Part shown: positions 38,407 to 45,976 of the stretch, one piece after another
Numbering within the stretch: position 1 is the stretch's first letter
Layout: each line of letters starts with the position of its first letter
Assembly: GCF_000143415.4 (NCBI RefSeq)
Contig: NW_003314271.1
Coordinates: forward strand, 2,544,312 to 2,608,311
Length of the DNA stretch: 64,000 bases
Origin: Selaginella moellendorffii
Taxonomy: Eukaryota; Plantae; Lycopodiophyta
Reading direction: 5' to 3'
Notes under the pieces: model-generated
What the model was told of the DNA's origin: nothing
The model's database searches: none
What the model saw: the letters and a program-made list of their open reading frames with translations, nothing else
Program-made: the position numbers and the translations under genes

Positions 38407-38763
38407 ATGTTCGACTCCACCATCGGCCTGGCAGCAGACATCGAAGGGAGAGTGGTCTCCTCCGCGCGCACATCCATGTCCAATGCAGCCACCTCCATGT
38501 CCGACTTCCTTGTCCATGCCGCCGCCGCCACTCCCGGTGCACCGCAGCCGGACGAGACGCTCCACAGGTACCTCGATTCCGTGGCCATGGATTTGCACGA
38601 GTCGGCCACTGCAAAGAGGGACGCCCACGCCCAGCAGCGCTCCATCACCAGGGACTACTCGAGGAAGAAGAAGAAACTGGGGAGAGCCTCCCAAGCCCAA
38701 GACGACGATGCCCGCGTCAAAAAGTCTAAGAAGAAAAAGAAAACACAACATCACCAGATCTAA
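38407..38763 (+). CDS. Small protein with helical N-terminus and Lys-rich (nucleolar-like) tail
   Basis: 118-aa intronless ORF, GC-rich like neighbouring genes, good ATG context, tail KKSKKKKK. Confidence 0.6.
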   Translation: MFDSTIGLAADIEGRVVSSARTSMSNAATSMSDFLVHAAAATPGAPQPDETLHRYLDSVAMDLHESATAKRDAHAQQRSITRDYSRKKKKLGRASQAQDDDARVKKSKKKKKTQHHQI

Positions 38764-38859
38764 GTTCCAAGGTTTTCAGCTCAAACTTCGATCGTATCCG
38801 TGGTCTTTTTGCTTGATTACACCGAGGGAGCTCCTCTCTTCTTGCCCGATTGATCACGG

Positions 38860-41800
38860 CTATCCGTGCGAGTACTTGACCGCTGGCCTGATGCGCATCC
38901 CCTCGAACGCCCCCTCGTCCGCGTTGTAGCAATCCAGCAAGTCCTGCACAGCGTCCTCGTTCCGCACCTCCACAAACGCGCACAGCTTGGACGAGTCATA
39001 CTTGTCCCGGAAGAAGGAGACGTGCGACACCACGTAGCTCGGGCTGCCCCGCCCCTTGCGCCTCAGGAACCTGTCCAGCACCTCCTTGATCGCCGTCTCC
39101 GGGTACTTATCCGGTATCCTATCCACGTACACCGATCTCCTCCTGTCAACCTCCTTGAAAACTCCATTCCCTCCTCCTCCTCCTCTAGACCTCCCCCGGG
39201 AGTCTTGGAGATCAAACTCTGGAGTAACACTCTTGCTGACGGCGGCGGCGGCGGTGGCGATAGTGGCACCGATAGCACTGCTGCTGCTGCTGTTGTTGTT
39301 GTTGATGTTGCTGCTGTGCGGCGTTGGCTCGTCGTCTCGATCGTGCCCGTCTTCCCTGTACATGTCTTCCAGCTTCGAGTTGAAGTGCGGCTTGAGCCGC
39401 ATATGGTCGAAGATTTCCTCGTCCCGGCTGTACAGCTCCAGGGCGAGGCGAGCCAGGTCCTCTGAAACGAACACAACAAACGCACAGTACTTAGCCTTCA
39501 CATGCCGCACCTCCGTCACCACCTCGTCCCCTAGCTCCGCCTTCTGCTCGCTCGTCATGTGTTCCAGCAGCACCGCCCGGAAGATCTTCCGGATGACCGC
39601 GTCGGACGAGTTCTCCGGGAGGTGGTCCGCGTACACCGTCTTCTCCGGGTCCGACCGCTGCTTCCTCCTGCCACCATATCCATCTTCACCTTCGTCACCA
39701 TCGTCACCACCACCCGGAGCTCGCCGTTTTGGCAGCCGAGGCGTCGGGGACATGTTTCGGTCCGACCGGGCCCTGTCCAGTGCTGCAAAGCTCCGCTTCT
39801 TTTCCACCCCGTCGTTGCTCCGCCCCAGCTCCATCTTCATGTGGCCGAACTCCTCCGGGTGCCGGTTGTGGAGGTCCAGCATGTACTCGACCAGCTCCGG
39901 CGTCGCCAAGTCCACAAACATGCAGCCCCGCGACGGTACGTGACGGATCGCCGTGACGAGCTTGCCGTCCAGGGACTGGTTTATATGGCTTGCAATCACC
40001 TCCTCGAACAGCTTCTTCACTTGGTCCGCGCTCGTGTACTTCCCCAGCTCCGTCAGGTAGAGCGGCTTCACTTTCCGCCGCCCGGCATCCGCGAGCAAGT
40101 CGGTCCCAAAGTCGTCCCTGTCCCTGTCCGCTACTGCTTTGCCTCGCTGATCTTCCGCCACTAGCATATCGTAGACTTTCATGGCCGCTGGCGATGGCAG
40201 CTCCACCTTGAGCCCGCAGAACAAGTCCCTGTCCGCCGTGTAGATCTGCAGCGTAGCTTCCAGCAGCTCGTCGCTTGAAAACTCCACGAAGAACGAGTTG
40301 CTGTCTTCCGACGCGTACTTGACGTCCGAGACCATGTCTGGCGACTGCTCGAAGCCGGGAGGGAGCTCGCTGGTCTTTTTCACCCTCTCCCGCAACACAT
40401 TCTCGAAAATCCCCTTGAGCATGCGGGGTGATGCGTAGTCGGGGCAGTTTGTCACGTAGAGTGGCCGCCTTGAGAGCTTCCCGTCCTTGCTTTCTCCAGG
40501 TGGCGGTATCGACTCTTTAGCAATCTCCATCGCCACTTGGTCAAGCAGCTCCAGAGTTTGCTTCGTGGCCCGTGCAAGACCGTTTTTCCTCGCACTGCTC
40601 AGGCGGAGTCCCACCTTGGCAGATTTTTTGGCGTCACCGTCCAAGACGACACCGACCATTATACTCGTCGACTCCTGGATCCTGTCTATGCTGCTGATCT
40701 CCTCGCCGTCACCTTGGAGTTTCCGGACCACCGAAGCTACTGACAAGGGGTCGAGCTGTCCGGGATACCACAAGATCTTTGAGAAGACACCGCGCTGGAC
40801 AACGTCTCCCAAAGCTTCTGCGGCTCGCCGAACGAAGTACCTGGCCTCCGCAGAAGGACAACTTTCCGTGATGCGCGAAGATAACTTAAGATGCAGAGCT
40901 TCTGCATGGAAGAAAAATTGTTTACAGAAGAAAGTTAAAGTGAAAGCCTCCTCACCTTGCTGAGGTTCCATGACATCCATCAGAAGAGTGACACCTTCGC
41001 AAGTCACCAAGACAAGTAACATCAATCACAACAGCAGGAAAAATAACTGAGTTACTTACCATAATCCTCACGCAAGTGTCTCGCGTTTTGTACCGATGGA
41101 ACCCAGGTTCGTATGTCGGGATCACAACTTCTCACAAACATCTCCGCATACGCCTCGTTCTCATCCTCTCCAGTAACTATCGTATACTCTTTTCCCTTTC
41201 GGTCTGGACTAGAACCAGCTCGCTCCTCCGAGCCTTGATGGTGGTGCTTCGTCACCTCTCCCTTCTCTTTCCCTTGCATTTTCGCCAACGGATAGTCACC
41301 ATCTACCTCCGCCCGACCCTTCCGCCCCGCTCTACCATCGTCGTGCTTATCCGCCTCCGCCTCCTTCAAGCGCTTCCCATTGCTGCCTTTATAGTCCGGC
41401 GACCTCTCCCTCTTCTTCTTATCAAAAGCCTCATGCTTCTTACTCGGTTCCACCACCGTCACCTTCTTCCCTCTCGCATCCTTGGCGTTCTTCTCCACCG
41501 GAGGAAGAGGAGGCGGAGGAGGAGGAAGACGCTCTCGCTCCTTCTCCCTCTCCTTGGACCGGCTCCTCACTCTCTCCCTGCCACTCTGTCCTCCCCGGCC
41601 ACCATTCTCCCAGGTGTGCGGGCCCCGGTCCTTGTCACCATCGCGATGGCGACCACCTTTGCTGGTGTCTAGTCGCGGGAGATAATCGTAGTTGCCACTT
41701 CTCCTCGCATAAACACTCTCTCTGTTGTCTCGGGTGTCTCGGTCCCGATGGTCCGCCTCACGGTCCCGATCACGACGTGGTAACCGTTCCCTGTCCTGCT

Positions 41801-43844
41801 CCTTGTCCCTCTCGTGGTCCCTGTGCCGGTGCCTATCCCTTGCCTTCCCCTCTGCCTCACCACCATTGGATTTGGATTTCTTCTCGTCCTCGCCATATCT
41901 TTTCCTTCTATCGTAGCTTGCATAGGCCGCCGCTTCTTTTCCACCTTGATCCTCGCTAACCAATTGTCCTTCCTCCAAGTCCTGCTGCTGGTGCTTGCTA
42001 TCTCCAGATAAATCCACATTTGGAGCTGAAGGTGGTTTGTCTTCCACTAAAACGTCCTTCTTACTGCTAGTGACTGGCTCGTCATCGATATTCGATGCTC
42101 CATCCTTGAGCCAAGCGAAAGACTCGTCGTCGCCATCCCCGGCCGGAGAGAGTGAGACGAAGCCGTAGAGGAAATCCTCGTCGGACGAGCTCAGCTCTCC
42201 TGGCTCGGCCTCGCTGAGCGCCGACGCAGGGACAAGGTAGAGGTCCGCAAGCCACACTTTATCTTCGTCGTGGAGAGGTACCACCGCGACCAAAGGACCT
42301 TTAAGTGATAGGCCGGGATCATTTCCCGTGCCACCACCAACAAGGAATTCCACCTACAAAAAGCAAGAGGAGCACAAGTAAGAAAAAAGTTCACAAACAC
42401 ACACACACGCACGCACACGAAAAAGAAGAGAAAATGACAGTTGACGAATCCATATCCTCCCTTACCAGCTTGTTCAGATTCGGAGACGACGCGCCGGGTG
42501 ATCTTTGCGTCACTTTGACACCGGGCTCGGCTACGTACTCCTTCACAGCTCCCAGAAATCTACACGCGTAATGTTAGAGTACACAAGTAGAAAACACGAA
42601 ACTTTCAACGAAGAAAACACAAAACCATGGAACAAAAAATGGACAGCACCAAAAACACCAGAAAAAAAAAGAAGAAAAAAAGCAAAGAAAAACAAAAGAG
42701 GTCGTCCAGAGTTCACGTACTTGTCGGTACTGGGGCAGCGTTGCACGGTGAGATCATCCGCCACCTTCCGGTTCTTAAAGACGTGTTGCCATCCCCTGGA
42801 GCATGCGGCCACCATGCTAGGGACTTTAACATCTTGGAAGTTAATCTGTCCTTGCCAGATCACACTCACGAATTTCGAGTCGTCGAGGGGGTCAGAGTGA
42901 TCGTGGTGGATCATGGTCTCGCTACTGGCGTTGTTGTTCTTGGTGGCGATGGTGGTGCTGATGGTCGAATCCTCGGCAGTAAGAGGAGGAGGAGGAGCGG
43001 GCGAGCTCTCCTCCAAGGTGGTAATCGAAGTTTTCTCCTCTCGAGCATCGATAAGATCGATCGAAGAGCAAAGCTTGTCATGAGATACCTCTAAGTCTGT
43101 GGTGTTCTTCGTCGCGTTGTCGCTGGGATGATCGTTCTCGATCGGGAAGAACTCACATAAGTTTCCTGGCGCGGTGGTGTTCTTGGGTTCTTCCTCTTCC
43201 CCCACGCCCGCGCGGCCGTTCGAGTCTACGGCATTGTCGTCCGTCCTCTCGTCGCGAAACAACATCTGGAAGCTCGTAGATCTAACCAGCGCCGGCGCCG
43301 CCGGCCGCTGGGATCTGGGCCACGACGCGGATCGCTGCTGCTCCTTGGCGGCGGCGGTGGCGATGGTGGCGGAGGAGGAGAGGCGCCACTGCTTGGCATT
43401 TAGATCATCATCGTTTTCCTCGCTGGGTGAGGCTGGAAGCAAGCCCCTACATTCGCTGCCGGGCTTCTCCAGCTGAATCTCTTCTTGACTCGCTTGGATC
43501 TCCGGCGCGGCGCCTTGTTCTTGCGCCTCTTCTTCCAAAGCCCTCTTTATTGGCTTCCACTGCTCCACCGTGTGCGCTAGAAGTGACAATCCCGAGCAAG
43601 CGCCCTCCTCTTCCTCCTCCTTGTCGACCTCTCGCGCTGGCGATAGATCTTTCTCCTTTCGATCTTGCTCCTCGGCAGCCGCGGCGCGAGCCGCCGATGC
43701 CTCTGGCGCTAGCGGCTCATCCGCCGGCTCATTCAGATCAAACATCTCTTCCTCTTTCTCCAGCGCCTCTCTAGGGAAGGAATCGAGAGCTCCGGAGAGA
43801 ACCCTAAAGCTCGAATCGCGGGGAGAAGCCATGGCCATGGCCAT
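38860..43844 (-). CDS. ~1530-aa multidomain RNA-binding protein (SPOC-like, RD/RS-rich, 2 KH-like, 4 RRM)
   Basis: Exons 43844-42721, 42559-42466, 42353-41060, 40994-40956 and 40901-38860 splice in frame (4593 nt); four RRMs with RNP2 (PLYV/PLYL/TVYA/SVYV) and RNP1 (FFVEF/MFVDL/AFVVF/AFVEV). Confidence 0.85.
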
Positions 43845-44072
43845 GGCCACCGCCGGCTGACGGCAATCGGACGGCTGAGATGCCTCGGCAGTGGACTTTT
43901 GCGGTGACACGTGTCGCGTCCCAGCCGTCCGCTGTAGGCCCATCCTGTACGCCGATAGTGGAAGAGAATCTAACGGACGCTTGTCGCCCACGTCAGCGTG
44001 ATACATATCCGACCCGTTTGAAAACCAGTATTCCAATTCACAACGTGGGGGCCATGTGATAAGGCGCAAAAG

Positions 44073-45976
44073 CTAAGTCACCGTTTGTGATCCAGATGAT
44101 AGCTCTCGAGCCAAGCCTGGAACTTGGACAAGGATTCCTGTCACTGATCCATCGCCGATTTTAATCTCCAGCCCAGGACCGCCGCATTGTTTTCTAATGT
44201 AGCACAGTCCAAAATATGGAGCTTCTCTCGTGCAGCTCGTCAGCTTCCCGGCCTTGAAAAGGGTGTGAAGCTATGGAACGCAGGTTTTGAGAAAAAATTA
44301 TTTGAGTACCTTGACACCATCTCTTGTCGTCAGGATCGTTCCTGGTTCCACAGCTCCGGTGAGTTTTACACCGTGCAAGTGTTGCTTCACACCGTTGTAT
44401 GTGATTAGTCTCGCCACTGTTTCCTGCCCGATGTAGCAACCTGGGAAATGTGATTGGCTGGTTTTCGTTTACGACGAAGAAAAGAAAAACTAACCTTTGG
44501 TTTGCGAGATTGTCCTCCAGAGTCCAGCTTCCAGGACGTTGAACTCGTCGGTAAGCTCCTTGCCAGGCACTGGCCTGCCTGCGCTTGCACGTCAAGAGCC
44601 TCGGTTTTCATAAAAAACAATCGATTGATTCTTCCATTACCTTGCAAGATTCGCAAGCGTTCCCAGGCCAAAGATCCCATGTGCAAAGCACCGCATTTTA
44701 ATATCGAGGTCCACACAGGACCCGCGGCGGCAGTGGACACGAGGAAAGAGTAGCCTTTCGTGCACAGTCCAGAGCCGACTCCCACGGTTACAGGTGCCCC
44801 ATTCGCCTGAAAAGTTGGACGAGATCAAAGTGTCATCAACTTTCCTTGGCATGAATGAATGCTTACGGTGTAGTGTACATGAGTTCCGTATGGCTTATCG
44901 ATCAAAGACTCCAACTTTAGCTGCCGCATAACCTTCAACAGGAAAGCATGATTGTTGCTTGAACATAAAGACAAGGGGGCTCTTACTGACATTATCGCTT
45001 TGGGGGCCTACGATTGAAAAATAGGAGGTCTTCTCTGTGATATCATCCACTTCCACTTTGTCCGAAAAGAAAATGTACCTAAACCAAAGAAAAAGTTGAG
45101 GGTCTGACAAAGTCGAGAAGAAATCGACAAGCTACTTATTGAGCAGTTTGATAAGATCGTGCCGAGTCTCTGGAGAAACGAGAAGAATCACAGCCGTATT
45201 CTGCACCAATCATCAAGTCTGCTGCAACCATTCCAAATCAACAGAAACGTCAAAGCGTGTAAATCCTCACCATCGCCCATGCGGTTGCTAGATCGATTGT
45301 TCTTGCGGTGTTCGTCACAAAAACTGTATCGCACCCCTGAAAAGCTTTTGATATCAGGAAAACCAACTCTCACACGCTACGTAGGACTTACCTCCCCGTC
45401 CTTAAGCTGCAGCAAATCAGCAGTACTCTGGTTGTGCAGAAACCGCAACCGGTCGTCACCAGTGACTGGAATAATAAAAGTCATCAGCGCTTGCAGCACA
45501 AACAATAGTATAGAACATTCAAACCCCGGAGTCTTCCAAAGTGAGACATCTCTATCACCTGTCAGTCGAGAAAATTAAACATCGTAGAAAAAGCGCTTAA
45601 ACAGTTCTCTTACAGCACATCCGGAATCGGCCGCTTTCAATGCTTCCTCATCGTTTCCAAAAGTCTGGACGATGCCATTGTCGGAGATCTGTGCACCACT
45701 TTCGAGCAAAACATCCTGGAACATCACAGCTTGCCATCAAATCCAGCGGAAACTCTGCTCTGCTACCTCCAAATCATTTTCTATTGGCGGAGGAACGACG
45801 TCAGGAACAGCGGCCACGACGACGCGACGAGCATCAAATTTCCCACTCAAGATCCTCGCGTGAATCCGTGATCTACTGCAAACCTTCTTGCTGAATGCGG
45901 CGTCGCGAGCCAAAGATCTGGCCTGTGGGACCGCGGCGGCGACAGCGCCAGCGCCTGGAACGCACAGGCTCGCCAT
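44073..45976 (-). CDS. Plastid YgfZ/IBA57-like folate-dependent Fe-S maturation factor (GcvT family)
   Basis: Transit peptide MASLCVPGAGAV; MSHFGRLR, DRLRFLHNQST, signature GCYIGQETVARLITYNGVKQHL; TAG at 44075-44073. Confidence 0.9.

Follow-up and report, generated by a model that had tools for sequence, protein, structure and literature searches.

A SPOC-like domain N-terminal to paired KH domains and four RRMs: an apparently undescribed protein architecture in Selaginella moellendorffii and other streptophytes

Introduction

What kind of protein is encoded by a long block of minus-strand coding sequence in the lycophyte Selaginella moellendorffii, and is that block one gene or two? The window that we analyzed is a stretch of 64,000 nt (NCBI RefSeq assembly GCF_000143415.4, contig NW_003314271.1, positions 2,544,312-2,608,311 of the forward strand; all coordinates below are positions within it). 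Three long open reading frames (ORFs) lie head to tail on its minus strand (42543..44069, 41052..42353 and 38860..41025), in a GC-rich block (0.52-0.63) with AT-richer flanking DNA. An earlier note, made from the sequence alone, joined them into one coding region of five exons (38860..43844, minus strand, with the stop codon at 38862..38860) and proposed that the product is possibly a single-chain factor of 3'-splice-site recognition or RNA processing. We found that the Selaginella locus is one expressed gene, the product of which carries, from the N- to the C-terminus, an EAR motif, an acidic region, a SPOC-like beta-barrel, a mixed-charge region, a pair of KH domains resembling those of RIK and KHDC4, and four RNA recognition motifs (RRMs). 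As to function, by analogy with known proteins we lean, with modest confidence, toward a Spen-like nuclear adaptor that would couple RNA binding to the transcription or co-repressor machinery.

Results

The stretch is contained in 20 public runs from 8 studies, with a word share of ~0.8, which is roughly equal to the exonic share. For the transcript test, Logan contigs of four runs (X1, X4, X7 and X9, from four studies) were compared to positions 38700-44300. The RNA origin of these runs was only guessed; nevertheless, contigs without canonical introns must come from spliced RNA. The five exons read from the sequence (43844..42721, 42559..42466, 42353..41060, 40994..40956 and 40901..38860, minus strand) have a continuous frame and sum to 4593 nt, and the four introns between them all have GT-AG borders: intron 1 (42560..42720, 161 nt, inside the SPOC-like domain), intron 2 (42354..42465, 112 nt), intron 3 (40995..41059, 65 nt) and intron 4 (40902..40955, 54 nt). 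Contigs in all four runs skip introns 2, 3 and 4, and those of X1 and X7 also skip intron 1, with the joint 42559/42721. Each exon, translated separately, matches exactly the RefSeq protein XP_024528816.1 (1584 aa; LOC112345746, annotated as 'uncharacterized protein'), here referred to as P0020. This database protein was used for all whole-protein work, and residue numbers refer to it; the coding region of the earlier note corresponds to P0020:55-1584. The in-frame model of 4593 nt is thus confirmed by spliced contigs from four studies and by the exact match of the exons to RefSeq. The peptide motifs quoted in the earlier note are all present, and its domain coordinates agree with ours within ~30 nt. 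It should be noted that intron 4 is in frame and has no stop codon, and the ORF 38860..41025 reads straight through it; an annotation based on ORFs only would therefore add 18 false residues inside the first KH domain (KH1).

A different explanation of the unusual product is an annotation artefact, in which neighboring SPOC-like and KH/RRM genes were joined, or else a decaying pseudogene. Contigs of X4 and X9 do break at intron 1, some of them keeping its 5' border, and the gymnosperm homologues described below correspond to the C-terminal half only. However, record 1 of X1 is a spliced contig of 4885 nt that runs over all exons; it begins at 43812, contains all four joints and extends past 38700. 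Record 15 of X7 spans introns 1 and 2. Moreover, the frame is open throughout, and the order of parts is the same in both Selaginella haplotypes and in seven full-length orthologues. We therefore consider the artefact extremely improbable; its two-gene form was rejected, being contradicted by the all-exon contig and the conserved order of parts, and the single gene of the earlier note stands, also in view of the RefSeq match. The short contigs that cross the border of exon 1 and intron 1 unspliced (record 6 of X4, and records 17 and 18 of X9) may represent regulated intron retention or simply pre-mRNA. With intron 1 retained, the frame would end at 42543, inside the SPOC-like domain.

Single-base differences between the runs and the window were seen at ~24 sites across 38789-44175, together with a 3-nt deletion at 38838 in the 3' untranslated region. 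These differences fit two divergent haplotypes, represented by P0020 and by P0001, the protein of the other Selaginella haplotype; the two proteins are 99% identical.

An exhaustive HMMER search with exon 5 found 19 proteins at E <=1e-3 among 1.84 billion cluster representatives, with a two-member cluster of S. moellendorffii RefSeq proteins as the top match. The EAR motif, the SPOC domain, the KH pair and four RRMs are found together in liverworts (Marchantia polymorpha, Mp4g15960, and M. paleacea), lycophytes (Selaginella and Diphasiastrum) and ferns (Pteridium, Ceratopteris and two species of Adiantum). The protein of the stonewort Chara braunii (P0015, 3763 aa) starts with MFDLNELP and has the KH pair and three detected RRM modules, with no detectable SPOC domain. 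Gymnosperm members (Welwitschia, P0043; Cryptomeria, P0053; Ginkgo, P0055) are ~870 aa long and consist of the KH pair and three RRMs only; their N-terminus carries a conserved basic/acidic sequence, M-D/E-...KRK.EDEL..F..FK.G.L, in place of the EAR/SPOC half. A SPOC profile built from the family detected nothing at E <=0.01 in the Chara protein, in members P0014 and P0047 or in the gymnosperm members. No named match from an angiosperm or a moss was found in the sequence searches, two of which scored the top 8000 candidates only, and absence from both groups is likely on this evidence. As far as the sequences show, the Selaginella protein belongs to a small streptophyte family that extends from stoneworts to ferns and is shortened in gymnosperms.

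The first conserved element is MFDLNEP (43725..43745, minus strand; P0020 residues 88-94, with DLNEP at 90-94), an EAR-type motif of the form DLNx(x)P. The EAR consensus is LxLxL or DLNx(x)P (PMC9956375), and it is matched by DLNEP in P0020 and by DLNxxP forms in the orthologues. In the alignment, MFDLNEP falls on the first residues of the orthologues from Marchantia (2 species), Diphasiastrum, the ferns Pteridium, Ceratopteris and Adiantum, and Chara. The full-length orthologues start with MFDLNE(L/I/T)P, except that Ceratopteris has MLDLNETP; the homologue P0004 starts with MFDLNLLP. The motif is thus at the very N-terminus in eight orthologues, including that of Chara, with residues 3-8 reading DLNELP, DLNEIP, DLNETP or DLNLLP. 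The EAR-like FDLNEP pointed out in the earlier note is therefore borne out as a conserved and, in the orthologues, N-terminal element.

The same alignment bears on the start codon. Three candidates were considered: ATG 44006 (RefSeq, 54 codons upstream of that in the earlier note), ATG 43844 (the earlier note) and ATG 43745. Transcript contigs of the gene end at 43812-43821, and there is no ATG from there to 43745; it should be noted that contig ends are not equal to transcription starts. Because the orthologues open with MFDLNE(x)P, ATG 43745 is most likely the true start, which gives a protein of ~1497 aa, and RefSeq probably places the start codon too far upstream. The start assigned at 43844 is thus the uncertain part of an exon model that otherwise holds. 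A separate, more deeply covered minus-strand transcript was observed upstream: its contigs run from 44257 to ~43906, cover the RefSeq ATG at 44006, end at ~43906-44013 and show a ~58-nt intron, whose donor lies near 44310 and whose acceptor lies near 44252. This transcript (43906-44310) is probably the 3' end of the upstream neighbor gene. Record 15 of X7 departs from the genome at 43795 with ~30 foreign letters, which were searched for in the window and not found there. An upstream exon was set aside as an explanation, since no canonical acceptor is present at the break. Possible sources of the foreign letters are a chimeric contig, a difference between haplotypes and an alternative 5' end.

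The SPOC-like beta-barrel (42078..42881, minus strand; P0020 residues 376-552) extends across exons 1-3 and is split by introns 1 and 2. No SPOC match was found when Pfam was run on whole proteins, and separate exons gave a weak RRM_1 match only; a search by exon is blind to this domain because its sequence is spread over three of them. When scanned by itself, the Diphasiastrum domain (P0026:394-590) matches Pfam SPOC (PF07744) at 26.7 bits, where the cut-off is 25 (E 5.9e-6; aligned to positions 4-93 of the 153 in the profile), while the Selaginella domain reaches 11.8 bits (E 0.22) and that of P0004 an E-value of 0.08. Membership of the Selaginella region thus rests on its orthology with the Diphasiastrum domain in the alignment. 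A language-model feature search of the ESM Atlas placed SPOC clusters first (0.91), with 16 of 30 matches being SPOC and the SPOC-like domain of AIPP2 at rank 13. We obtained an AlphaFold2 (AF2) model of the Selaginella region with a predicted local distance difference test score (pLDDT) of 52 and a predicted template modeling score (pTM) of 0.53. Foldseek rows for this model are almost all SPOC domains of RBM15, FPA, SHARP and PHF3, Ku, and MED25-ACID barrels (E 2e-3 to 1e-1), and VIA gave Z 5.2-6.4 over 92-108 aligned residues for the same SPOC/Ku/MED25 set where scored. Neither the SPOC alignment profile nor the Diphasiastrum region alone retrieved anything relevant from the PDB sequences. 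The third strand ends in a basic residue in most members (TVQR, TVEK, RVER, SSRK), and L-Y-L is nearly invariant. Phosphoserine binding by SPOC domains involves a basic surface patch, with an Arg on strand 3, a Tyr and a Lys/Arg (PMC4981400, PMC10111866). Taken together, the Pfam match in Diphasiastrum, the Atlas search and the Foldseek and VIA barrels support both the reading of residues 376-552 as a divergent SPOC-like barrel and the earlier identification of this domain.

The KH pair consists of KH1 (40792..41147, minus strand; residues 863-941), a type-I KH domain whose coding sequence includes the 39-nt exon 4 and is interrupted by introns 3 and 4, and KH2 (40510..40785, minus strand; residues 944-1035), which has a KH fold like that of KHDC4, RIK and SF1. 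The AF2 model of residues 863-1035 has a pLDDT of 87.4 and a pTM of 0.77 and shows two beta-alpha-alpha-beta-beta-alpha units. The best Foldseek matches of the pair are tandem-KH structures of FBP (KH3-4), PCBP2, IMP1, FMRP, Krr1/Pno1 and KHNYN. Using VIA, KH1 matched KH domains of FUBP1 (KH3), N4BP1 and KSRP with Z 8-9.2. The first match of KH2 was the solved KHDC4 structure (KIAA0907, 2yqr; Z 10.6, 107 residues aligned, 22% identity), followed by chain 7vpx_D of the human pre-A spliceosome, Msl5 and Sam68 (Z ~8). The same structure was the best PDB match of the KH family alignment profile (2yqr, E 0.0087), and a shape search of the ESM Atlas returned the plant 'Protein RIK' cluster first, with KHDC4 included. 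Nothing usable came from the Atlas feature search when the KH region was the query. In Pfam, matches to PF22675 were obtained for 10 of the 12 orthologue regions, the best with E 3.4e-6, and Selaginella gave none; where listed, its scores are ~14 bits and do not reach the 30-bit cut-off, though the E-values are significant. PF23469 (KH_12) was not detected.

The loops of both domains are atypical. The KH1 loop has no glycines (W-V-P-S-V) and hence no GXXG, and the loop between helices 1 and 2 of KH2 reads GDGEE in Selaginella and GEDG, GDDG, GDQG or GLDG in the orthologues. It should be noted that GDDG is an engineered KH mutant with impaired nucleic-acid binding (PMC3413153). With GXXG missing in KH1 and acidic in KH2, the pair probably does not clamp RNA in the canonical way but serves as a platform, either structural or for protein binding. 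The two KHDC4/RIK-type KH domains with a degenerate GXXG that the earlier note had recognized are thus well founded, given the confident model, the KHDC4 match and the RIK cluster.

Four RRM modules complete the protein: RRM1 (40195..40473, minus strand; residues 1048-1140; RRM_1 at 24.2 bits in the P0004 counterpart), RRM2 (39820..40074, minus strand; residues 1181-1265; RRM_1 E 0.18), RRM3 (39382..39654, minus strand; residues 1321-1411; RRM_1 E 0.087), which is the best conserved of the four, and RRM4 (38881..39150, minus strand; residues 1489-1578; RRM_1 E 0.015, PNMA_N E 0.0037, U2AF65 RRM1 E ~0.01-0.15). P0020 as a whole matches RRM_1 (PF00076) at 24.4 bits against the cut-off of 20.7, and RRM_1 matches were seen in 10 of 11 members; single modules score 12-24 bits. 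According to hhalign, the four modules are mutually homologous over ~85 residues with 97.8-99.5% probability. A pooled profile of 47 RRM sequences retrieved only RRM proteins from the PDB, nucleolin first (1.5e-10), then CELF1, Sxl and HuC; U2AF65 RRM1 gave the longest single alignment (positions 3-67, E 0.009-0.015). The consensus has L-Y-V in RNP2 and K-x-C-A-F-V in RNP1, with Cys instead of an aromatic residue at position 3 and a retained Phe at position 5. In all four modules, helix 1 and strand 2 are separated by a long insert. The earlier description of four U2AF65-like RRMs is therefore correct as to the four modules and the insert, while the likeness to U2AF65 RRM1 (E ~0.01) appears, at sequence level, real but weak and not specific.

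These data allow us to weigh the proposal that the protein is a single-chain co-transcriptional factor of 3'-splice-site recognition or RNA processing, in which the KH pair would act at the branch point in the manner of SF1/BBP, the RRMs would bind the polypyrimidine tract in the manner of U2AF65, and the SPOC domain would be a tether to RNA polymerase II (Pol II) at its carboxy-terminal domain (CTD). The order of KH2 matches, from KHDC4 to the pre-A spliceosome chain, Msl5 and Sam68, is in its favor, and KHDC4/Blom7 is a splicing factor associated with Prp19 (PMC2781463); the length of the U2AF65 RRM1 alignment and an RD/RE-rich region typical of splicing proteins point the same way. However, KH1 has no GXXG, and KH2 carries GEDG or GDDG, the latter being the impaired mutant described above; neither loop looks suited to RNA binding of the canonical kind. 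The likeness to U2AF65 is no stronger than that to nucleolin, CELF or Sxl, and Pfam found nothing beyond RRM-like, KH and SPOC domains in any member, and hence no sign of accessory elements of U2AF (UHM, ULM) or SF1 (QUA2), although these were not specifically searched for. In addition, shortened gymnosperm members and the lack of a detected angiosperm member are unexpected for a core splice-site factor, and the latter argues against a core splicing role. We therefore regard the splice-site factor as unlikely.

The acidic, Ser/Pro/Glu-rich region between the EAR motif and the SPOC-like domain (42882..43724, minus strand) was defined by composition and is poorly conserved; it has no Pfam match and no conserved columns in the family alignment, and is presumed to be disordered. 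The mixed-charge, disordered region (41151..42077, minus strand; residues 553-861) contains RD/DR/RE/ER/KE runs and a Pro stretch, and has no Pfam match either. Arg makes up 13% of it, Lys 10-12%, Asp 10-13% and Glu 11-12%. Two basic clusters in it, RRKR and KKKR, are possible nuclear localization signals, judged from their composition. This region had been described as RD/RE/RS: the RD/RE part holds, with KE in addition, whereas RS dipeptides are few. The linker between RRM3 and RRM4 (39151-39381) carries a low-complexity, Asn/Ser/Ala-rich stretch (NINNNNSSSSS...ATIATAAAAV) that is absent from the orthologues; this stretch attracts unrelated contigs and a false joint, 39259/42981, in X1. This joint (AT..GT, with a 20-nt side) was rejected as an assembly artefact of low-complexity sequence.

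Discussion

SPOC domains have been described as hubs that bind phosphoserine and connect transcription to RNA processing and to silencing (PMC10111866), and Spen proteins are the factors that combine RRMs with SPOC (PMC10111866, PMC4981400). Our preferred reading of the Selaginella protein as a Spen-like nuclear adaptor would work as follows. The four RRMs would hold RNA, probably nascent, and the SPOC-like barrel would dock on a phosphorylated partner, for which the Pol II CTD and co-regulators are candidates. Recruitment of TOPLESS-type co-repressors would fall to the EAR motif, as its strictly N-terminal position suggests. The mixed-charge region could target the protein to nuclear bodies, and the KH pair, with its missing or acidic GXXG, would serve as a structural or protein-binding platform.

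Several observations weigh against this adaptor reading. The EAR motif is short, and its binding to TOPLESS is a prediction; in Selaginella the motif is DLNEP and not DLNxxP, and with a start at either of the two upstream in-frame ATGs it would become internal. For the SPOC-like domain, the Selaginella model has a low pLDDT of 52, and Z values of 5-6 alone are not decisive; the PDB sequence searches gave no residue-level alignment to a solved SPOC domain that would place the phosphoserine-binding basic patch and the Arg/Tyr pair. KH2 is closest to KHDC4 and to SF1-type KH domains, which fits a splicing role equally well. Gymnosperm members are without EAR and SPOC; thus, the conserved KH-RRM core must have a role that is independent of them. 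Finally, a literature search found the Marchantia and Selaginella gene identifiers in no paper, and the function is deduced from the parts of the protein.

The Spen family (SPEN/SHARP, RBM15 and plant FPA) shares with the Selaginella protein several RRMs and a SPOC barrel. In contrast to Spen proteins, here SPOC (residues 376-552) is N-terminal to the RRMs (1048-1578), the KH pair and the mixed-charge region lie between them, and the EAR motif is N-terminal; moreover, the RRMs form a subtype of their own, and for the most part SPOC scores fall short of the Pfam threshold. Since the order that defines the Spen family is RRM followed by SPOC (PMC10111866), the Selaginella protein is not a member. 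A related proposal would make it an FPA/RBM15-like regulator of 3'-end formation, termination or RNA modification, in which the RRMs would choose the transcripts and SPOC would bring in processing factors, the EAR-like motif being incidental. Every characterized protein that combines RRMs with SPOC has a role in silencing or in co-transcriptional RNA processing (PMC10111866), and the FPA SPOC domain is among the fold matches. However, the domain order is inverted, no Spen-family RRM is among the matches of the pooled RRM profile, and the strictly N-terminal MFDLNE(x)P from Chara to ferns indicates that the motif matters. Such a regulator is, in our judgment, improbable.

Other known systems share single parts. 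RIK (the plant RS2-interacting KH protein) and KHDC4 (BLOM7, KIAA0907) have in common with the Selaginella protein a pair of type-I KH domains; unlike it, they are without SPOC or RRMs, and the acidic or missing GXXG loop is found in the Selaginella family instead. Like the modules described here, U2AF65 RRM1 has a long insert separating helix 1 from strand 2, and its RNP1 follows the same pattern, x-x-(aromatic or Cys)-A-F-(L/V)-E-F; U2AF65 itself, however, combines an RS region and a ULM with two canonical RRMs and, at the C-terminus, a UHM, whereas here there are four equivalent RRM modules in a different arrangement, and at E ~0.01 the sequence relationship is one of resemblance and not of membership. 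PHF3, DIDO and SPOCD1 (TLD-SPOC) also have the SPOC barrel, and the SPOC domains of PHF3 and SPOCD1 are among the fold matches; the PHF3 domain reads the phosphorylated Pol II CTD. Unlike these proteins, the Selaginella protein has no PHD or TFIIS-like domain. In Krr1, Pno1/Dim2 and KHNYN, which act in ribosome biogenesis or as an antiviral nuclease, tandem KH domains, the first without GXXG, form one platform, and the Foldseek and VIA matches cover both domains; however, there is no sequence relationship, and the KH orientation differs (root-mean-square deviation >7.5 Å over both).

A survey of SPOC families lists TLD-SPOC, RRM-then-SPOC and a few lineage-specific variants, none of them with KH domains or with SPOC before the RRMs (PMC10111866), and literature searches by gene identifier and by domain combination found no description of the family. 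The earlier remark that this domain order was not previously known is thus upheld within the survey and the literature searched: the gene is already annotated, as 'uncharacterized', and its architecture and family appear to be undescribed. It should be noted that Pfam-based surveys miss the family because its SPOC and KH domains score below the thresholds. The inverted, KH-containing SPOC architecture adds to the known families of SPOC proteins, and the strictly N-terminal EAR motif, which is shared by members from Chara to ferns, suggests that here an RNA-binding protein is connected directly to the co-repressor TOPLESS.

A broader and more speculative idea, which we put forward tentatively and hold to be doubtful, is that EAR-SPOC-di-KH-4 RRM proteins constitute a third, hitherto unrecognized class of SPOC proteins, an ancestral streptophyte device in which RNA binding would bring TOPLESS-type co-repressors and contacts with the phosphorylated CTD to chromatin, as a plant counterpart of silencing of the SPEN/Xist type. 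The origin of such a device would predate land plants, with loss of the EAR/SPOC half in seed plants and of the whole protein in angiosperms. If true, this history would explain why the genetics of model plants never found the family. Independently of this idea, the distribution marks the family as a candidate case of RNA regulation that flowering plants have lost, and this could explain its uncharacterized status.

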